This document shows, piece after piece, positions 1 through 12,112 of a DNA stretch of 12,112 bases. Position numbers and translations under genes: made by a program. Position 1 is the stretch's first letter. Every line of letters begins with the position of its first letter. The notes below the pieces were generated by a model, which searched no databases, was not told the origin of the DNA, and saw only the letters and a program-made list of their open reading frames with translations. Source of the stretch: Selaginella moellendorffii (Eukaryota; Plantae; Lycopodiophyta); the NCBI RefSeq assembly GCF_000143415.4, contig NW_003314453.1:1-12112 (forward strand), in the 5' to 3' direction.

Positions 1-776
1 CACCTTTGCAAACCGGCACCATTCTGTCTCTTAAAAAGTCAATGAGTGATTAAGAAAAAGAGGGAAAAATTTAATTGACTCTGTAAGCAAGAAATCGCAT
101 TAATGAAAGTACATTATATCCACAAACCTGTCACGAGATCACACATGGTAAAATTTACTACGAAGTCCACTGTCATCATAACTGTGAACTTCATAAACGT
201 GGTTTTGTCGGATTACTGCGTTCTCATAGCTTGTGAAAACAAACAAAACCGCTGCTTCAATGCTGCATCGTGGCGACTGTAAAACGCTAGCTTCTCATAC
301 AAACCCTAGAATTTAAAACAAAAAAAAATTAGTGTAGATACACATAACGTTGTATGGAAATCCAGAAAAATAAAACATTAAACAGGATTCGGCTGTTCAC
401 TCAAGTTATCATCGATTCGCTCGTTGGACGCCCCACCAAACTCAACATTCTAAAGCACCAAATGTGCAGAATATTCCGTAATCAGTCCAAGCATCCTCGA
501 ATCCCAAACACTCTACTTTTGCAATAGTACATCCACAAACACTAGGATTAAAGTAAAAAAGATAAGAACAAACACAGTGTGACATAGATTATTACAAGCG
601 GTAACCATCACCTTGTTCAGCTAACGGTTTCCTAAGGAGCAGCACTGCACCTCTTGATTTGAACACATTTTAATACCAGAGATGAAGATGCTGAATCCTT
701 GAATGCTTGTGATTGCATAGCTTTACCCTATAGTTGATAATCACCTATCTGAAGATAAGGTTAAAAACTGCAATAC

Positions 777-1368
777 CTGAGTCATATGACTCGCATAATT
801 TGTAATTAGTTGTAATTGTGTCCCATTTAAACCGCTGAGGTACGGGAGAAAATCCTTCCCAATTACTACATAAATGTCAACCAGAGAGAACAGAACAGCC
901 TGCAGCACATAGTACTGATGTCGTGGGAATGTTAAGGCCCTTAAAATGGAATACCTGTCTCACGTCTTCTTGCTGGTGCTTGAATGCCTCTACAAGCACT
1001 GGCAGAAAGGTTGGAAGCCTTTCAACTAGCATTTCCTTAGGAAGTCGTTTCACAATCTGCCCACATGCAAGTGTAAGCGTCACAAGCTACAATCTTCAAT
1101 ATATTCACCTGTTTAAGAATCTCTGGGATAATTGACAAGGCCAATTCCCTAGTAAACTTATCAGAATCCTTGGCCGCTTCCAATACAGTTGAAATGAGCT
1201 TGTCAAAATACTGCAGATATTAAATCCTTTACTTTAAAATGATGCTCTTTATGTTAATGTGCAAACCTGTGACCAAACTTTTGTGTCGCTAGATTGGTGA
1301 AGCCGGGCTGCTGCGAGCAATGCCTCGTGCTTCTCTGATAGCGTCTTGTCAGGTCCCCAAAGAAAGAC
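777..1368 (-). CDS. CLASP: CLASP-like gene exons for the C-terminal TOG-like (CLIP-ID) domain
   Basis: Four phase-0 exons (102, 102, 102, 123 nt) with GT-AG introns 1369-1415, 1211-1266, 1057-1108 and 900-954. They translate without stops to VFLWG..VWSQ|YFDKLISTVLE..RELALSIIPEILKQ|IVKRL..DVRQ|AVLFSLVDIY..HMTQ. Confidence 0.88.
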
Positions 1369-1415
1369 CTACATTAGAACACGTTACGATATATCACTAA
1401 AACACCATTATCTAC

Positions 1416-2782
1416 CCGCTCAGTTAGCATGCGAGTAACGTTATTCTCAGCACTTCCAGTGTCTGGATTCAAATGTGCAGTGTCAGCCCCGTCCGAGACG
1501 TCCACGTTCATTGAGTAACTGTCTACCCATCTTCTAGTTTTGTCGCAGTTTATATCCCACCCAGTATTGGAGTCCCTGATTTTGGGTCCAATAATCGTCG
1601 GGTCGCCAGAATTTTGTGGAGTTCTACAGTTGAACCGTAACTCCTTCACCATTCCTTCGTGCACACCCGATCTATCCATCTGATTTGGATTTGGAGGCTT
1701 ATTGTCACAATTTTTTACTGCTGGAAAAACGTGCATGTAAGGCTTCCTCATTGCTGACATATCAGTCTCCTCCATGGTAACCAGAGGAGCCCTGTGACTC
1801 CTAAACCGCATATGGTCCACAAGGTCGACCTCAATCTGTGGAACATATTGCTTTAAGGACCTCCTCAAGGCGGTTTGCTCGTCAACTGGCAAGGCCAAGA
1901 TAAACTCGAGTACGATTATAGTATCCAGGTGAGAGTAGACAGCTATGNNNNNNNNNNNNNNNNNNNNNNNNNNNNNNNNNNNNNNNNNNNNNNNNNNNNN
2001 NNNNNNNNNNNNNNNNNNNNNNNNNNNNNNNNNNNNNNNNNNNNNNNNNNNNNNNNNNNNNNNNNNNNAAGCACCAATTGCATACTCTATAACTGCCACC
2101 TTTCCTTTTGGCGAACGTTGCTCGTCAAGGGAGCGGAGAATTGCTGGAAAAAGTATTTTAATGTCGTATGCATTTCCAATAGCTTGTAAAGCTGCTGCCG
2201 CAAGCTCGCAAGTGGCATGCCTTGAGTCCACCAGTCGAGGAAATAGAAGCGGAAGCATTAAATCTAGCTGAACTCCAAATCCCTTCTTACATGCCTTTAC
2301 CAGATCAACCACTATAGAAAGTGCCGCCTGAGAAACTTTGAAGTGTGCATCCGTCAAATGGTCCCGGAGCAATCTTATGATGCTATCAAAACACTGGTGG
2401 ATCTCTGACAGGCCCTTTGAACCTTGGTGTAGAAATTTCTTGATGGAAGAAAATGCTCCCACTCTGACAGACCAATCAGCAGTTTTACTAAGACTTTCTG
2501 CAAGAGTCTCGTCTAACGATATCATCCCAGAAATGCAGCAGGGTTCTCCTGGATCTTGTGTAGCATTACAACAACTTTGGCCCTGGCGTGTTTGTGCTTG
2601 AGTTTCGTCAGGATTGTTGTCAGCTACTCGAGGTTCGCTGATGATCACGGAGACTCCATCATGATCACTACCATCAAGGTGAACATCTAATTGAAATGAA
2701 GGTGATGCAAGCTGGGGAGCAGACGGTGCAGCTATTGTTGACCGCACGTTATTTGAAGGGCCATGCTTTAACAAGTAGCTTC
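1416..2782 (-). CDS. CLASP: Large internal exon of the CLASP-like gene (linker, TOG3, linker)
   Basis: Lies within ORF 1374..2852. Acceptor ctagCAG| at 2783 after a 49-nt phase-1 intron (2783-2831); donor CGG|gtagat at 1415. The frame is preserved across the N block 1948-2068. Confidence 0.88.
1948..2068. other. N block (121 nt) inside the CLASP TOG3 exon
   Basis: Run of Ns; the frame is preserved and 41 codons are affected, close to the spacing recalled for plant CLASP. Confidence 0.95.
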
Positions 2783-3233
2783 CTGCTAGAAACCTGGGTA
2801 AAGTTTTAGCTATAATTCCCATAAAACAAACCTGCTGGGGACGCGTTTTCATTCAGCTGTTTTTTCATCCCAGCAACAGGAGATGGCACTTTTGGTCCAC
2901 ATGTGCATACCCTTGAATCAATCTTTCCAAGCATAAAGATCAAGCTTTCAGTTCCAATCTTAGCTCGTGAACAAGAACCTAAATAAGTACCTGACCAGGC
3001 CGCCGTAAGGAAAATGTTCGAATCTCATCTTTAAAATGGTCTCCCTTTTTCTGATATAGCTTCTGGAAGATGCATACGAATGGAACTCTTACCGTAAATG
3101 AATTGATTTGTACCTCCAAAATTTTCATAGTGGCTTCCTTAACATGAGTTTAGATCTTTAACCAAGTCCAAAACCTGTGCAAACAAAACGCAAGTCAAGT
3201 CCAGAATAGAAAATGAAGATTCTTCGATTTTAC

Positions 3234-3773
3234 CACTGGAAGTAAAAGCTGGACGACAGGGAGTTCGTCTAGAGAAAAAAGTCTAATTACGGAGTCTAGC
3301 ACTCGCACAAACTCCTCACGAACTTTACAGTTGTAATGTTGAGACGCATTAGTGCTGATCCTTTCAATTACCATCGTCGGTGAGAATATCTGAAAGGCGT
3401 CAACAACTAGAAGACCATGCATAGTTGTTCTTATTTGCCAGGCAAGCAAAATTTTCAAGATTGTCAACTACCTGCATGAGAGCTAGCAGGAGTCCACGCC
3501 CTGCATCACGGACGGACTGCTTGTCGTCTCCAAGTCTATCTATAATTGCAGGCAGCAGCGCCATGAAATCTAGCTGGAGTCTATCACCAGCGAGAGACGC
3601 TGCTGATGCAAGAACGTGAAGGGCTCCCTGACATACTTCATGATCTCGGTCCTTAAGGAGATCAACGGTGGCATTGAGTAGGTTTCCCACATCCGTCGCA
3701 TTCAAACTTTTCTGGTTCCTGTCAAGAACTGCTTGCAGCTTCTGTACGACAGCAACTCTCTCTCGGTCATCCT
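3234..3773 (-). CDS. CLASP: CLASP-like gene exons 1-2 (TOG1 N-terminal part)
   Basis: ORFs 3400..3999 and 3195..3467 are joined by an 82-nt phase-0 GT-AG intron (3390-3471): ..LLLALMQ|IFSPTMVIER.. The start codon is expected about 10 codons into the N block. Confidence 0.88.
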
Positions 3774-3969
3774 NNNNNNNNNNNNNNNNNNNNNNNNNNN
3801 NNNNNNNNNNNNNNNNNNNNNNNNNNNNNNNNNNNNNNNNNNNNNNNNNNNNNNNNNNNNNNNNNNNNNNNNNNNNNNNNNNNNNNNNNNNNNNNNNNNN
3901 NNNNNNNNNNNNNNNNNNNNNNNNNNNNNNNNNNNNNNNNNNNNNNNNNNNNNNNNNNNNNNNNNNNNN
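3774..3969. other. N block (196 nt) covering the CLASP start codon and most of the ALA-CLASP spacer
   Basis: Run of Ns directly 5' of the CLASP 'DDRER' segment. Confidence 0.95.
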
Positions 3970-4026
3970 CGAATATACCACAAATATTGTATCTGGCACT
4001 AAAAATTGTAAAGGCGTTATCGTAAG

Positions 4027-7000
4027 TCAAGAAGTTTCTGCTGTCTGAAGTGATGTCTCTCTGGAGCTGACTGACGTCTTTTTAGAAGTCGACCGGGAGG
4101 CAGGATGCAGAAAAGAATCTTGCTTGCGTCTGATCTCTTGAACAATGTGATTGTCCATTGGCCTCAACGAACGTTGAGCTGCTAAAATTGTAAAGTACGG
4201 AAACAGGGATATAGGCGGTATAAGAATAGTAGCCAACCAATAAACAGGGCTAGGAAGCATAACTTCCACAAAAACCTTGTAACCTGTTGTAGAAATAGAT
4301 GTGCAGAGAAATCCATAGACAATTAAAAACAAATACCAAAGGAAAATGCTTCCCCATATACCCAAGTGCTGAATCCAGCTAAAGTGATTCGTTGTCAACA
4401 CCATCTGAAGGCTAACTATCCAGATAATGCATGTGTACATACTTGTACCGAAGGCATCCAGGCTTGGTGTTTTCCCGTCCTTTCTGAAGGAATGAAGCTT
4501 ATAAATGTTCCAGGTGAAGTAGTAAGTGATAAGGGAGCTATATATGCTGTTGGTAAACCAGGCGAAAACTTGAGACCAGTTGAATAGAATGTTCTTAGGT
4601 CCTTGCTGATAAAGAGCAGGAAACTGTAGGCACCCTCTTGCAGATACGTCTTGTTCAAAAATGCCAAGCACCAATGCAGGAATGGAGGTAAATATTACGT
4701 TGAACAAGGACATAGTCCAGTCATTGTATACCGTTTGTCCAGAATAACATGTATACGCTTCGTAGTAGAAAAGAGTGAGACCAAATGTCATGTTTTTGTA
4801 AAAGAAGTAGCAGATCTGCAGGTACCAGTATTCATTAGCAATAAAGTATCCATCCTAAAGACTAACCATTGAAGAAATTCTTTTGTAACACCAATGTCCA
4901 TGAACAATTAGCAAACGCTCCAGAAAGCTAAATTGAGCAATTGCAAAGTCACTAGCCATAACTGCCTATATAAGGTCTCAGTAAACAACAAGTATGTTCA
5001 GAGGAAAATATGAACCTGCATGCCTTCTACGCCACTTATACCAACACCAATATGTGCCTCCTGAATCATGCCCACGTCGTTTGCTCCATCTCCAATGGCC
5101 AGGGTAATTTTACCTGTCCCTTGTTTAACAAGCCTTGCCACCTGCTTGTGGATGTTAGTGTTCAAACATCTATAATTCAGACCAAACTCACCAAAGCTTT
5201 TTGAAGCGGTGAGACTCTACAACAAATTACAGAAGCACATTTTATAGCTAGCTTAAGCAGGCTCAATTTCAAATCCTCACTTAGCGCATATGTGAGAGAT
5301 TTTCCATCAATAATCAATGCAAATACTGTATTTAAACTTTTTTCAGAGTCTACATCTTGTAAACCTGACATAATAAGTTCCTGAACTTTATCCTGTAGAA
5401 GTCCTGTGTTATCAAATGCGTGCAAAATAAGTATATAAATCAGGATTAACCTTAGCAACTTCTTCCATCTCTCTAGGAGCATCTACTGAGGAGATATTTA
5501 AGAGCTCCGGTGCTATAATAATCTGCTTCATTCCCTGTCTAATCAAATTGCAAGCATAGCTGCACATACGTTATAAAGATAGTATAATGCACACCACAAA
5601 AACAGGATAAGAGGCAGACCCAATGTTGATAGCAGTCTCGAGCTTATCACCTGTCAAAACCCAGATTTTAAGACCAGCTTGTGCGAGGATCTCAATACAT
5701 TCTGGAACCTGCGAAGTCTACTACCATATTGAAAGGCAAACTTTATTACAAAAAGCTTACTCCTTTTTGTAGTTTGTCTTCTACAGCAGTGGCACCTAGA
5801 AGAACAAGATCTTTCTCCAGTTCATCCGATGCATTGTTTAGTAACAACTCACGCTCAATGCCAACAGTAATTTTGGCATTTTGAAACGTTTCATTCCACC
5901 TGATGTATTCGGTTTCCTCAATCTTTCGATATGCCAGCACTAGTGTTCTTAGACCAGCCTCTGCATACTTACCAAGGTGCGCTCGAGTAGCTTCTTCATA
6001 TTGGCGACCGTTTACACCAAGTCGTTCAAAGATAACGCTGGGGCCATAATGTGAGTAAAACAAATTAGCAGTTCAATTCAATATAAACCTGTCAGCACCC
6101 TTGCAGAACAAAATAATTTGTCCATCTTCTCCCTTAGCTACTACAGACATCCTTTTTCTTGTACTGTTGAACTCAAGAAGATTCAGTATTTGATATTCTC
6201 TGTACAGAAGTTTTAGTACACTAACTTTGAAATTTTATAGGGCAAACCTTTCCAGCTTTGTGTCAAGATCTATATCGGGTTCCCATACCATGACACTACT
6301 TTGGTTCCTTTTAAAAAAAATAAAACCAAATTCTCTGGCAGCTATAACGAAGGCATTTTCGTCTGGGGATTCTGCTTCATAGTGGATTTCGTTGTCGTCA
6401 TCCTCTTCGGCAATAGCAGAGTGACAAACTGCTAACAGTTGAAAAAAAAGCCGTATCGAATGAGGATTGGGCTCATATATCCAGTTGCCTTCCATTAGGC
6501 GTTCGTCCTTGAAGTTAAATCCTTTAATAGTGGGAGCATTCGTCTGGACTTTTTCTGAAGACAAGCAGAACTTCTTGTTATTATCATCTTCGGAACAAGA
6601 CTCTTGAATGTCTTCAGATTCCCATTGTTCTTTGCTAAGTCTTCTTGCAATACTTTTCTCTACCTCCGTGACACCTCGACCATAGGGCGTGCCTGAAATT
6701 GAGCACTTGAGAAAATTCATAGAGTTGCATGTCAAAGTTCCAGTTTTGTCAGATAATATGGTGTGAACTTGCCCAAGTTCCTCGTTCAAGTTGGAAGTTC
6801 GTGCTTGAGCTGTCTTGTTGGACTCTTCGTGAAACATTTGCCAGTCCCAGTTGATAAAACTGGCTTGCACTGTCTTAACAATCTCGATTGAGACATACAA
6901 AGAGATTGGTATAAGATACCCATATAAAATAAGTGCTGTAACTAGATGTAGAAATGATGCAGCAGTTGCTCGTCGAGGATCATAAAACACCTGCGCCTTG

Positions 7001-8052
7001 TCAGGAGACATATACCACCATGTAGGCATTTGTTCTTTTGTTACTATGCCGTAGAAAAGAGAACCAACAGCAGCAATTAATAACAAGACGCTGAAAAGGA
7101 TGTAGATGATGTAGTCCATTTTTTTCTCAATGCGGCTTCGTTTTGAAGGAGGGTCTGTAGCGTTTTGCATGACCTTCGTGTCATGACCGCTAAATATTAC
7201 AACCCCATATATAAAGTCTGTGTTTCGAAGTCTTGATCCCCGAAGTAACAGTTGCTGGGGCCCAAGAGAACTAAGGTGGTCGTCAAAGTCAAGTGTTCCA
7301 ATAAATGTGTACAAGCTGTTATTTGGATCTTCACACCTCACAATTCCATCAAATTTCTCAATGTCTTCCTCATCAACTATTTTAACCGTGATTTCTAGTG
7401 ACTGCTTCACCTTCAAATTTGTTTCACCATCAAGGGTCATGGTTTCGACATAGCAGATTCCATCTGTGTAACTTGTGGATAGCATGAAAAGGTCAGCTGG
7501 GAAAAAGTGATCTTTTCGAACCATCACAATATCCCCAACAGTAACATCTTGCCACTCTCTTAATTCAAATTCTCCAGTTCCACAGTTAACCAAAACCAAC
7601 CGAGAATTTACCTCTTTGTCCTGCAGAACGAAGAGCTGATAGAGCAAAGAAGAGACAAATCTGTATTGTACCTGCTTATGGCGCCTCCAATCTTCCAGTC
7701 CCTCTTTAAGCATGCTTATACCCATGACAAAGATCAAAGGTGCGATCAAGCTGCCTGGAGAGAACGGAGTTAAGGGCGTGAGTGACAAAACTGCAGCAAA
7801 CAAAAAGTATTGGTTGGCCACCCTTCTGAATTGCTCAAATAATGCCTTTGGGAAGAATGTGATCACGTCGTACTTAGTAGTAGAGACATAATTGGAGAGG
7901 TATTTCAGAGGACCAGCCTTGTGTTTTCCTGGCTGGTTGCAGTATACTACCCTTGAGAAACCTGTCGGTGGAAAATCCTTCACTGCAGAAGGTTTGCCGC
8001 AGCAAAATGAATATAATCTGCTCCACCTTACACGTTTTCTGTCACCAGTCAT
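4027..8052 (-). CDS. ALA: P4-type ATPase (phospholipid-transporting ATPase/flippase), ALA family, most like the ALA4-12 group; 10 exons, 1184 aa
   Basis: Motifs: [41 protein letters not shown] (phospho-Asp, 6736-6750), [66 protein letters not shown]. Exons 8052-7672, 7620-6248, 6199-6089, 6037-5761, 5708-5620, 5559-5451, 5392-5192, 5141-5016, 4965-4867, 4815-4027 sum to 3555 nt in frame. All nine introns are GT-AG and 48-60 nt. The start is taken as the first in-frame ATG (8052). Confidence 0.96.
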
Positions 8053-8301
8053 TGCAGAACATGATACCAGTCCCACAGGCGGCTTTTTAAAAGACTATTT
8101 TGTTGGTTGAAACAAGCAAACCTGCGCTTTTTCACAGTTAATGACACGTAAACACACGGCCTAGCTAAGGGTTATTTTTAAAGACAAACCGCACTGGTTT
8201 TGCCTATGAAAAAGCCGGACGTCGGGATGAGGCACGTCATCCGCAGAAGCACCGGGATGGTAGTTAGCTAACAGTGGCCCATAGGGTTGTCTCAAGACGC
8301 C
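8053..8301. promoter_or_regulatory. Putative bidirectional promoter between the flippase and the coiled-coil gene
   Basis: Only 249 bp separate the divergent ATGs (8052 minus, 8302 plus). The region has three ACGT-core elements (ACACGT ~8144, GACGTC 8218, CACGTCA 8233) and the palindrome GTTAGCTAAC (8263-8272). Function is inferred from position. Confidence 0.55.
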
Positions 8302-11300
8302 ATGGGAGCCGACAGTGTGTTGAAGATGGCCAAAGGCGTAGCGACCTGGGAGTTTCCCGCCCTACAACGCGTAATGAGGCTGTCAGCTAAGTCCTGCCGT
8401 CAAACTCAACCGAAACATAGTCCTCGGACTGCACCAGTTACCGCGCCTCAGGTTCCAAAATCTTCACGAAAAGTAGCTGCTGAATTGAGCGTGTTGATGC
8501 TGAAGTTAGAGACAGATTTCATGGCAATTACTGGGGAGGAGGGCCGAGAAAAATGGAGATGTTTCATGAGAGAAGGAACCCTTATTGAGGCCTGGCTAGA
8601 TAGAATGCTACAAGAATCTGAACACAAGTAAGTACTAAAAGGATTAAACATAAAATATGGACCGTCAAATGGTACTTTATTTCTTGAGTTATAACAGGGC
8701 TGCGCATGGCGATACCAATAGTAGTTTACAGGAATACGGTCTATCGAGGGTACAACTCGGTATCTTAGGTCTCTCTGAAAGTCAGATCGATAGAGCATAT
8801 CGCATGCTATATGTCTACTCTGTTGGTTGCAACGAGATGATCAAAGAGCTTTGCCTGCACAGCCTCGAAAAGGCTGTGTTTGTTGGCTCCTTCTGGCGTG
8901 CCTTCATACATCTTTGTGAGGGACATTCTAAGGTAAATAGCAGTCTTTAAATTCTTGAATTCCCGCCTGTTTCACTAGGTCGAACTTCAAGCGGAGATTG
9001 CTGAGCTAGCAGAGGACAAGAAAAATGCTATAGACGAGTTACGCATGATGCGAGGTTGTTTGAACGAAGCATTGGATGGCATAGCTCTAAATAGGCTTTT
9101 AGCAAATGAGGATTGGGAAGTCACTGATAATATAGAAGCAACCACTCTCCCAGGAAACGGAGATATTAGAGAGGTATATTTGGCATTTAGATGAATGCTC
9201 TTTATTTTGATATCACCTGCCTGCTATCAGCTGGATGAAAAAACAGGAGAACATGACCTGGATATTTTGACAAAAAGATGTGAGCATTTGAATAAAGAAA
9301 GAGAAGAGCTTCAAATTCAGGTGAGACCGCAATAGGCTCAACTGATTCATTAACTGCGGAAGTTTATTCAGCTAGACGAAACTTCAAGACAATTGCGAAT
9401 GGAGCATTCAGCATTAAATCTCACCACCGCTAAAGAACGAGAGAAAACGGGAAAGGTGGTTCAATTAGAAGAGTAAGTATATGTAAGAAATATTATTTCT
9501 TACGAACTTCTACTTTTTTCAGAAAACTTTTTCAGGCGAAAGAAGCTCTAGAGAGGGAAAGGAGTGAAGCTCATCATTTGCGTGAGTTATGTAAGAAACT
9601 GGAGCATGATGTAGAAGAAACTGAACGAAAGACAGCGGAGATTACTTGGAAGTTTGTGCAGTATGATCGTGATTTTCCTGTTCTACAGAAAGAGGTACTG
9701 CTGTAGAGGTCTTACTTCTTTATTTAATGTTTTTCTTTTTTGTTTCAAGCATTAACAGGTGACAGAAAAAAGACACCTTGCTCAAATGCTCGAAAATGTG
9801 AATCAGCATGTTGAACAGGAATGCACGATATTGAAACATAGAGTTGAGCACCAAGATGCAGCGTTGGTGAGGCTGAGAAGGCAACTTGATACTTATGAGA
9901 AGGCAGTGAAATTTCTAAAAGACGAGGCTAAAGAACATACTCGACTTTTCGAAGATAAAGCACGAGNNNNNNNNNNNNNNNNNNNNNNNNNNNNNNNNNN
10001 NNNNNNNNNNNNNNNNNNNNNNNNNNNNNNNNNNNNNNNNNNNNNNNNNNNNNNNNNNNNNNNNNNNNNNNNNNNNNNNNNNNNNNNNNNNGAAAGGATA
10101 AATGAAAAACAGAGTCTAGAGGCAAAAGTGCGGATGCAACAGGAGAGTTTGAGGGCTTTGACAGTGGGAATAGCATCTCTCACTCCTCATAGAGTTTTGG
10201 GAATTCCTAAAGTGTCGATATTATCAGAGGTAAGCATAGAAACTGAACAGTCCCGAGCTGAAAGAAGGCTTTCAAGGAGGCTCTCGAGAAAAATGTCTCG
10301 GAGGGGAACAGAACTGGCAAAGAGAGCATTAGAGTTCTTAAAAATCCAACAGCCAGGAGAAGGCAGAATAATCAAGGAAAGCGAGCTTAATGAAATTTCG
10401 GAGTCAGATTTGAATTCTGACGAAGAGTGGGATGACCTGTGCTCTGAATTATCACAACAACGAGAAGAGATGGAAAAGATGGAAGCTAATCTTAAGGAAG
10501 AGAGAGATAGACGGTGCTGGATGGAAAGGCATGTAGAAGCTTCAGTGAAAGAAGCTGAAAGGCTAAGGTCTGAAGTTAAGCAAACAAATACTAGAATTGT
10601 CAATCTTGCCATAGAAAAGAAAAACAAGGAAAAAAACCTTCAGATTGCTGAAGAGCAGATTCGTAAGCTTGACAGGCAGCTTGAGAGCATGGAATTGACT
10701 CTCGAGAAGAAGAATGCAGAGATTGCTATTCTTAACAATATTATTATTAGGAATCTAGAAAGGCAAGCTCACTGTGCTTCAACATGTAAACAACTTCTAA
10801 CAACAGGTGCCAAGTTGCTAGAGGACGGTATGGTCCAGGAAATGAACGTAGTAGGTAGCAAAGTATCTATTTTAATGGAAACTGTAAGGCTGCTCAGGAA
10901 CAAGGTGACAAAGGCAGGTATGGAAATAAGAAGTTGGAAGCTGAAAATGAAAGCGGCAGATGGTCAGAATGCAGCTATGTTAGCCGAGATGAAAACCCTG
11001 AAGAGCGAACTTGAGTCAAGTAGCGCGGATAACATAAGCCTTGATTTCAAGCTTCAAAAGGAGGAGCAGTGTAGAGCAAAAGCGGAAGAAGAGCTAAACA
11101 GGGTACTTAAGGCGTCGGCTGATTTGAAACTCGACCAAGTGGTTCTTGAAGTGCACCTCGAGTCTTCCTTAAACAAAATCATGCAGTTAGAGATGAAAAA
11201 TTACAAAAGTGAGGCGAAGCTGGAGGAATGTGATCGAAATCTAAATGTACTGCAAAATCAGAAAGAGAAAGAAGATGCAATTCGTGGAATTTTGCAGTCA

Positions 11301-11360
11301 GAGGTCGATGCCTTGCGGCTGGAGGTGGAAGGACTAAGACGTCAGCTTTTGGTTACTTAG
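8302..11360 (+). CDS. Uncharacterised multi-exon protein with an N-terminal helical globular domain and a long coiled coil (~900 aa or longer)
   Basis: Exons 8302-8627, 8698-8932, 8979-9173, 9231-9320, 9372-9472, 9523-9694 and 9759-11360 join in frame (2721 nt) through GT-AG introns of 70, 46, 57, 51, 50 and 64 nt with matching phases. The sequence is E/K/L/R-rich and heptad-like. An extra in-frame intron at 8452-8505 is possible, and splicing at 11352 may bypass the stop at 11358-11360. Confidence 0.8.
9967..10091. other. N block (125 nt) inside the coiled-coil gene
   Basis: Run of Ns; the reading frame is the same on both sides, so it could be coding sequence or a 126-nt intron beginning at G9966. 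Confidence 0.95.
10263..10310 (+). repeat. Degenerate 12-nt coding tandem repeat x4 (RRLS RRLS RKMS RRGT)
   Basis: aga agg ctt tca / agg agg ctc tcg / aga aaa atg tct / cgg agg gga aca. Confidence 0.6.
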
Positions 11361-11407
11361 TTGAACCTTCCGAAATAGTAGTAAAGTGGTAAAACTCTCA
11401 ACTTTAG

Positions 11408-12087
11408 GATCCCATTATTGCATTGACCATCAAGAAATTTCTTGTCTCCTGTCTGCTCGCTTAAGTTTATAGAAGCCACCTTCCTTTTCTCAAGAATATA
11501 CCTTTGTCTGTTATTAGGTCAGACCATGGTTGGTAGTAGCGCATCCACGAGTGTTATAAACGAAGCAGCCTGGATGCACCATGGCAGTTCATCGCCAGCA
11601 TGTAAATCTGGTATTGCTGAGACAGTAAATACCGGCGATCTTATTGGGTCGCTGGAGAATATGCGCAAAGAGAATGAGGATCTTCGTGCTACTCTAGATA
11701 CGTACAAGAAAATTCTTAACGATTCGGGTAGGAAGGGCATCGCCAATTTTTCCGATTGCCCTTCTAATGTAAATTTCTTACTTTTGCCCGAGTTTTCTAT
11801 TTTAATCTCATGTGTTTCAGCTCTATGAACAATTAAGAGACAGAGTGGAGTCAGTTTCCTTCCTTCAAAAGTTGGAAGAGATAAAATCAACTGAAGATGC
11901 CGTTACCTCAATTGATCTACCACTTGCTGGTAATTCTTTCCTCATTTTAGATGCTACAACTGGTTGTAAGAATGCAGAGGATGATCTCGTAACAGCTGGC
12001 ATTGATGATCCAAGATGGTGGGTGTGGGTGTCGACTGACCTTTTTGGAGCTGCCAATGAGGATGCTGTGGAGGGAGATATACACTAG
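11408..12087 (+). CDS. Further plus-strand coding exons: 3' continuation of the coiled-coil gene, or the start of a separate gene (ATG 11526)
   Basis: ORFs 11442..11828 and 11812..12087 join in frame through a 52-nt phase-0 intron 11769-11820 (..CPSN|LYEQLRDRVE..). A path of intron 11352-11407, exon 11408-11450 and intron 11451-11517 links them in frame to the upstream gene, but its donors are weak. An in-frame intron at 11930-11977 is also possible. Confidence 0.55.
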
Positions 12088-12112
12088 TGAATGAAACGAC
12101 ATATTGAAGGAT

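Follow-up and report, generated by a model that had tools for sequence, protein, structure and literature searches.

The locus analysed here raises the question of whether a plant can carry, besides its ordinary CLASP (CLIP-associated protein, also known as ORBIT or MAST), a paralogue devoid of the entire TOG2 domain, and whether such a gene still yields a protein. In mammalian CLASP, TOG2 is both necessary and sufficient for the suppression of catastrophes (PMC6035287). According to our analysis, the gene is a real TOG2-less CLASP paralogue at the DNA level; its present-day function is doubtful.

The window, that is, the whole stretch of 12,112 nucleotides that was analysed, corresponds to GL377757.1:1-12112 of GCA_000143415.2, with identical letters over 1-12112 in a comparison with GL377757.1:1-22087. 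The scaffold measures 94 kb; the window, its initial 12.1 kb, is followed by an 8.8-kb N gap and contains N gaps at 1948-2068, 3774-3969 and 9967-10091. A coiled-coil open reading frame at 9756-11357 shows 100% identity to a Selaginella moellendorffii RefSeq protein. An independent DNA run from 2024 provided a contig, here termed X1, which covers 2069-3773 in one piece and is collinear with the window. Over these 1705 nt, X1 and the window differ by 27 substitutions and a single 2-nt indel, and given the number of substitutions X1 probably derives from the other haplotype or from another accession.

The same assembly also carries a canonical CLASP of 1422 aa (XP_002985873.2), located on GL377635.1, plus a second haplotype copy of it. 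This is in line with the initial annotation, which had regarded the window gene as a CLASP paralogue and had suggested a tblastn search of the same genome for a full-length relative. Mapping of the canonical gene revealed 22 exons and introns of 48-68 nt. In comparison, the CLASP-derived gene of the window runs on the minus strand from 3771 to ~632 and comprises 11 exons and ~879 codons, a total that includes 11 codons presumed to lie inside the N gap 3774-3969 and that agrees with the 870-880 codons estimated beforehand. Homology searches, family scans and fold predictions were performed exon by exon. The features of the gene are as follows:

3472..3771, minus strand: exon 1 (TOG1, canonical residues 12-111), located by tblastn with 50-52% identity to canonical CLASP
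3234..3389, minus strand: exon 2 (TOG1), 156 nt, equal to the length of canonical exon 2
3114..3174, minus strand: exon 3 (TOG1), 61 nt in the window and 63 nt in X1, the latter equal to canonical exon 3
2991..3062, minus strand: exon 4 (final helices of TOG1), 72 nt, reduced to 69 nt if the AG three bases on is used; canonical exon 4 has 69 nt
2945..2990, minus strand: intron 4 with a compromised acceptor, in the same state in both alleles
2832..2958, minus strand: exon 5 (TOG1 end and beginning of the linker), homologue of canonical exon 5, both ending in phase 1
2783..2831, minus strand: 49-nt phase-1 intron in place of canonical exons 6-13 (residues 266-607, TOG2) and their introns
1416..2782, minus strand: exon 6 (linker, TOG3 and tail), homologous to canonical exon 14, both opening in phase 1 with A-AGC
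1267..1368, minus strand: exon 7, corresponding to canonical exon 15
1109..1210, minus strand: exon 8 (first C-terminal HEAT repeat), counterpart of canonical exon 16
1057..1108, minus strand: 52-nt phase-0 intron in place of canonical exons 17-19 (residues 1254-1324)
955..1056, minus strand: exon 9, 102 nt, equal to the length of canonical exon 20
777..899, minus strand: exon 10, 123 nt, equal to the length of canonical exon 21
632..727, minus strand: exon 11 (31 codons, then TAG), counterpart of canonical exon 22; this end is the model of the present analysis, the GenBank model ending at 378

For exon 1, 300 nt are visible compared with 333 nt in canonical exon 1, and the start codon and the first ~11 codons presumably sit in the N gap 3774-3969. 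Exon 6 holds a 492-codon open stretch and consists of 84 disordered acidic linker codons (2782-2531), TOG3 (~2530-1767) and a 116-codon low-complexity tail. The N gap 1948-2068 falls within TOG3 and reads as 41 X, at a place where the canonical protein has 42 residues.

Several lines of evidence agree on the absence of TOG2. On the minus strand, TOG1 ends (..LIFMLGKIDSR) at 2943-2911 and TOG3 starts (GMISLDETLAESL..DWSVRVGAF) at ~2528. What separates them are 26 codons of exon 5, a GT-AG intron of 49 nt (2831-2783) and 84 codons of exon 6, without any N. The spacing of about 110-120 codons and a 49-nt intron that had been read from the letters was thus reproduced (~110 codons and one intron of exactly 49 nt). 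Pfam detected no domain in this interval, and no TOG2 or CLASP_N match was found between 2950 and 2530. With three full-length canonical plant CLASPs as tblastn queries against the window, collinear matches were obtained for residues 12-204 (on 3771-3003), 756/804-1015/1061 (on 2534-1749), 1218-1250 (on 1213-1115) and 1315-1399 (on 1086-777), while canonical residues ~230-750 and 1254-1324 have no counterpart in the window. Neither Pfam nor tblastn matched the TOG2 residues anywhere in the window, save for a weak paralogous match to TOG3. When AlphaFold was run on 2780-2070 with 15 homologues, the first 88 residues (2780-2517) displayed a pLDDT of ~50 and no secondary structure, and confident HEAT helices (pLDDT 95-98) begin at 2516. 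X1 agrees with the window in this stretch, and the initial observation of an apparently missing TOG2 is confirmed. Since X1 is collinear across the whole of 2069-3773, with an indel of 2 nt only, an assembly collapse is very unlikely to be the cause of the absence.

The comparison with the canonical gene points to the way in which the domain was lost. Exons 1-5 of the window copy correspond to canonical exons 1-5, exon 6 to exon 14, exon 7 to exon 15, exon 8 to exon 16, and exons 9-11 to exons 20-22. Intron positions, phases and exon lengths coincide with those of the species' own canonical CLASP (156 = 156, 63 = 63 in X1, 102 = 102 and 123 = 123 nt). From the correspondence of exon lengths and phases between both genes it follows that two intron-to-intron deletions removed canonical exons 6-13 and exons 17-19. 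The former encode residues 266-607, which comprise the whole of TOG2 and the beginning of the basic linker, and the latter encode residues 1254-1324, a stretch of 71 residues that makes up approximately the two HEAT repeats in the centre of the C-terminal TOG4/CLIP-ID domain. In each case one intron of normal size was left (49 and 52 nt, respectively) and the reading frame was kept. The TOG1-TOG3-CLIP-ID order that had been proposed for this gene therefore holds for TOG1, a short linker, TOG3 and a C-terminal domain, but the CLIP-ID is incomplete by ~71 residues.

The retained domains differ in their degree of conservation. TOG3 is the best preserved part; phmmer aligned it with the TOG3 of plant CLASPs at an E value of 6e-70, and the best PDB matches of the exon 6 model were CLASP2 TOG4 and TOG3. 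Compared with 22 land-plant CLASPs, it has kept 26 of 31 invariant columns (84%) and 58 of 89 highly conserved ones, versus 20 of 99 variable columns. Retained positions include the W of DWSVRV in the first HEAT loop, the K of HFKVSQAAL and the DEQRSPKGK loop. TOG1 and the C-terminal exons taken together follow the same trend more weakly (89 of 139 invariant versus 82 of 213 variable columns kept). Exons 1-4 align to canonical residues 12-204 with 43-57% identity, with the frame broken in the reference allele; TOG1 alone keeps 39 of 58 invariant positions, versus 26 of 31 in TOG3, and two invariant tryptophans of its exon 2 are lost. The C-terminal domain retains intact counterparts of canonical exons 15, 16, 20, 21 and 22 and has none of exons 17-19.

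In CLASPs, a basic serine/arginine-rich linker precedes TOG3, with an SxIP motif in animals and a FQRPLLR..GRSSGS block in plants. The linker of the window copy contains no S/T-x-I/L-P (SxIP-like) motif, and acidic sequence has replaced the conserved FQRPLLR/serine-arginine block. It is shorter than the canonical linker and carries a net charge of -4 over 125 residues, compared with +6 in canonical CLASP.

The divergence between the two genes speaks to the age of the copy and to the constraint on it. Over 485 aligned codons, pS between the window copy and the canonical gene amounts to 0.86 and is saturated, while pN is 0.32. The duplication is therefore old, and the copy was under purifying selection through most of its history. 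Nor is it a long-dead duplicate, given that long-term pN is far below pS and that the conserved TOG3 positions were retained. A TOG3 tree nests the copy among the land-plant CLASPs (98/96 support), within an unresolved polytomy, and its end branch measures 0.88 versus 0.1-0.27 for the others. A sister placement to the canonical Selaginella gene is compatible with the data (AU P 0.145). Between the window and X1, 25 differences were listed, 19 of them in the coding model and 6 in ~276 nt of intron. The 19 coding differences split into 10 nonsynonymous and 9 synonymous ones, equivalent to a raw pN/pS of 0.35. The synonymous excess has a P of 0.02 under a flat model and of 0.085 under the observed mutation spectrum, and recent constraint as judged from these allelic differences is hence suggestive, not significant.

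Two lesions were found in the TOG1 exons, of which the first concerns exon 3. The reference carries a 2-bp deletion there, after which the frame shifts (behind ..DLNS) and runs into a TAA at 3141-3139. In X1, two extra bases behind 3145 bring the exon to 63 nt and yield ..DPNSHVKEA.., near the canonical sequence. Either the lesion is confined to one allele or it is an assembly error, as Sanger coverage is low here and N gaps lie on both sides.

The second lesion concerns intron 4, where a stretch with the acceptor AG and the first exon 5 codon is missing relative to the canonical gene. One AG, at 2946-2945, lies ~15 nt downstream of a CTAAG branch-like site and reads CAG in X1; with it, an intron of ordinary size (46 nt) is removed, but the frame is lost and meets a TGA eight codons later. 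Use of the AG at 2960-2959 keeps the frame and leaves an intron of 32 nt. Just two in-frame combinations of donor and acceptor are available, of 32 nt each, whereas the other 36 introns measured (9 in this gene, 6 in the neighbouring flippase and 21 in canonical CLASP) have 47-82 nt; we found nothing usable in the literature on the minimum intron length in Selaginella. Neither allele, window or X1, contains a normally spaced in-frame acceptor for intron 4. Skipping of exon 4 or exon 5 was considered as a rescue and rejected, as the frame stays broken. The other 9 of the 10 introns and all other exons are intact.

The transcript and orthologue searches were negative. Three S. moellendorffii RNA-seq runs of 9.2 million records each contained no read on 2069-3773, and 16 contig sets of the same species, from runs labelled merely as probably RNA, contained no words of this stretch. 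As the RNA-seq runs were searched without a positive control, the absence of RNA is weak evidence against expression. When 1.84 billion representative proteins were searched exhaustively with phmmer, nothing closer than canonical CLASPs (33-43% identity) was returned, and so neither an orthologue nor any of the TOG2-less relatives whose existence the initial annotation had proposed to check was found there. A stand-alone protein model of the CLASP-like gene is likewise missing among the 1.84 billion representatives, and the literature held nothing usable on a TOG2-less CLASP from Selaginella or any other plant. Short CLASP-like proteins, including matches of 550-735 aa, were inspected as candidate TOG2-less orthologues and rejected; they are fragments or mis-models of canonical CLASPs with the usual TOG2-TOG3 linker. 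Of the two signs that, according to the initial annotation, would together point to a decayed duplicate, the lack of orthologues was observed among these representatives, and the long-term pN of 0.32 versus a pS of 0.86 is clearly not neutral.

The sole public model of the locus is a GenBank model of 1824 aa (378-8052), which fuses an upstream P4-ATPase (flippase) with the CLASP-like part and shows flippase Pfam families along with faint CLASP_N/HEAT matches. Judged by its length, it seems to use exons 5/6 onward and to skip the TOG1 exons. The flippase lies on the same strand as the CLASP-like gene and has its own in-frame stop at 4029-4027, ~225 nt from the expected CLASP start, a distance that depends on the gap size. 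We judge the model to be an automated merge of two close tandem genes because of this stop, because CLASP homology starts from residue 12 at the gap edge and because an intron of ~1.2 kb would be needed. This merge with the flippase had been overlooked in the initial annotation, as had the frameshift and stop in exon 3, the broken acceptor of intron 4 and the missing exons 17-19.

Taken together, we favour the reading, with a probability of about 50%, that the gene is an old, intron-bearing CLASP duplicate that is now silent or dying and whose full protein is made poorly or no longer. The comparisons show that an unprocessed duplicate of Selaginella CLASP lost exons 6-13 and 17-19 with the frame kept both times, and that it thereafter evolved several-fold faster than canonical CLASP under purifying selection that maintained the folds of TOG1, TOG3 and the C-terminal domain. 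In the reference haplotype the 2-bp deletion gives rise to the exon 3 stop, and the normal intron-4 acceptor has disappeared in both haplotypes. Production of the full TOG1-TOG3-CTD protein has probably ceased or become very poor, and the gene may represent a unitary pseudogene of recent origin. During its active period, the protein would have had neither the catastrophe-suppressing TOG2 nor the basic linker that targets microtubules and EB, and might have offered at most a TOG3 action, such as weak rescue or lattice contact, together with partner binding.

This reading has to accommodate that 9 of 10 introns and the other exons are intact, which implies an inactivation very recent relative to the age of the gene and thus an a priori unlikely catch. 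Moreover, the 2-bp deletion is absent in X1 and possibly an assembly error, the allelic pN/pS of 0.35 leans towards ongoing constraint (P 0.02-0.085), and expression restricted to certain tissues (gametophytes, antheridia) would escape RNA runs that lack a positive control. Splicing of a 32-nt intron may also be possible in Selaginella.

The same observations lend some weight to a gene that is functional now, which we consider a real but less probable alternative. It would encode TOG1, an acidic linker, TOG3 and a shortened TOG4, with the 2-bp deletion being an assembly error or a null allele and the 32-nt intron being spliced. Such a protein could bind partners or the lattice via TOG3 without suppressing catastrophes, and might modulate canonical CLASP or compete with it, perhaps in a particular cell type only. 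The roles suggested at the outset (scaffold, competitor, factor in sperm formation) are hypothetical. Consistent with this are the saturated pS next to a pN of 0.32, the retention of conserved tubulin-facing positions in TOG3, the confident AlphaFold HEAT fold resembling CLASP TOG domains, the integrity of all 3' exons and splice sites, the intact exon 3 of X1 with its more canonical DPNS motif, and the allelic pN/pS of 0.35. It is weakened by the 32 nt of each in-frame version of intron 4, compared with at least 47 nt in the 36 other introns, and by the premature stop that follows from the well-spaced AG, which is even better (CAG) in X1. The two lost tryptophans in exon 2 of TOG1, the lack of RNA in the runs examined and of an orthologue among 1.84 billion proteins, and the allelic P of 0.085 under the observed mutation spectrum also count against it. 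A more specific version, in which a delta-TOG2 CLASP without a basic linker and with a four-repeat TOG4 has been anciently maintained by way of the 32-nt intron in a restricted Selaginella cell type, is nearly as probable; such a protein would regulate canonical CLASP or compete with it, or would use TOG3 to act on the lattice or in rescue.

In animal CLASP, TOG3 promotes rescue only mildly, CLIP-ID is inhibitory, and TOG1 relieves the inhibition by CLIP-ID (PMC6035287). If this carries over to a lycophyte, a protein from this gene would be expected not to stabilise growing ends alone.

It is improbable that the downstream half alone (linker, TOG3 and C-terminal domain) is in use, starting from the Met of exon 5 (2868-2866) or from an internal promoter, with the TOG1 exons decaying. 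Both lesions do fall in the TOG1 part, exons 6-11 are flawless, the public model seems by its length to be restricted to this half, and TOG1 keeps fewer invariant positions (39/58) than TOG3 (26/31). On the other hand, the TOG1 exons are still open, their sole indel is allele-specific, and an internal start lacks evidence, with no RNA found.

A true flippase-TOG fusion, in which the CLASP-like exons form the C-terminal part of the P4-ATPase gene as in the 1824-aa model, is highly improbable. The GenBank model with its flippase families and faint CLASP_N/HEAT matches, the shared strand and the short distance of ~225 nt (dependent on gap size) would suit it, but the stop of the flippase at 4029-4027 follows a C-terminal tail that looks of ordinary length, and CLASP homology from canonical residue 12 at the gap edge implies an own start codon. 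The fusion would further need an intron of ~1.2 kb that swallows four TOG1 exons in a gene with introns of 46-82 nt, and the automated merging of close tandem genes is common. Finally, that TOG2 exons were collapsed or lost in scaffolding is scarcely credible even in a region as poor as this one (three N gaps in 12 kb at a scaffold end, with an 8.8-kb gap thereafter), as no N lies between 2069 and 3773, X1 is collinear there except for one 2-nt indel, and the 49-nt intron is bounded by regular GT-AG and is in the phase that a junction of exon 5 with exon 14 would require.

If selection maintained the copy for a very long time without TOG2, a function visible to selection would reside in TOG1, TOG3 and the C-terminal domain by themselves, and the gene would represent a natural separation-of-function allele for plant cell biology. 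If it is dying, it provides a clean case of in-frame loss of exon blocks in a compact genome. In our judgement, the public annotation, which wrongly fuses the CLASP-like gene to a flippase, is herewith corrected.

Among known systems, the closest is canonical plant CLASP itself (S. moellendorffii XP_002985873.2 and Arabidopsis CLASP), with which the window copy shares ~50% identity in TOG1 and ~41-52% in TOG3 as well as homologous C-terminal HEAT exons. It differs from canonical plant CLASP in the absence of exons 6-13 and 17-19, in a rate of evolution that is 3-8 times higher, and in a GC content of ~40% versus 48%. The same TOG1-TOG3-CLIP-ID order without TOG2 is found in an engineered human construct, CLASP2-alpha deltaTOG2 (Aher et al. 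2018, PMC6035287). Unlike the Selaginella copy, this construct retains the basic SxIP linker and a full CLIP-ID, and its behaviour may or may not carry over to plants. Mammalian CLASP2 gamma and beta lack TOG1, keep TOG2 and are produced from alternative promoters. These isoforms likewise tolerate the loss of a TOG module, but in their case TOG2 is kept and promoters rather than a genomic exon deletion are responsible. With unprocessed or unitary pseudogenes, the window copy has in common a frameshift and stop in the reference, a damaged acceptor, undetected RNA and the lack of a stand-alone annotation. It differs from them in a long-term pN far below pS, in its conserved residues, in 9 of 10 intact introns and in an intact 492-codon exon; should it be a pseudogene, it became one very recently.

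In the GenBank annotation of GL377757.1, a single gene of 1824 aa occupies positions 378-8052 of the window on the minus strand, and this one model combines a complete P4-ATPase (ALA-type flippase) with the CLASP-like exons. It is probably a merger, made by the gene predictor, of two tandem genes. The genes that accompany the CLASP-like paralogue in the window are as follows:

4027-8052, minus strand: plant P4-ATPase (phospholipid flippase), with its start at 8052 and its own stop at 4029-4027
8302-12087, plus strand: long coiled-coil gene, for which two public models are in conflict

The P4-ATPase gene is apparently intact. Its first exon has 604 codons, and the six introns that were measured are 50-60 nt long. 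Its closest relatives in a database search, within the length range searched, share ~56% identity. The coiled-coil gene is represented in RefSeq by a model of 723 aa named 'myosin-10' (ORF identity 100%) and in GenBank by SELMODRAFT_432127 with 882 aa. Since no Pfam domains are on record for this gene, its naming as a myosin seems to be an artefact of the coiled coil.

The window lies at the extreme start of a 94-kb scaffold, contains three N gaps and is directly followed by an N gap of 8.8 kb (12113-20901 of GL377757.1). The region is therefore poorly assembled, and indels within the window should be read cautiously.

Within TOG3, five of the 27 allelic differences between the window and X1, a contig from an independent DNA run, are clustered in 21 nt (2199-2219), and a single codon carries two of the five. 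A small complex mutation might account for this cluster, as might a conversion tract.

The GC content is about 40% in the paralogue DNA (600-3771), compared with 48% at the locus of the canonical S. moellendorffii CLASP (L001, 3001-8407), and this difference partly explains why the synonymous difference between the two (pS) exceeds 0.75.
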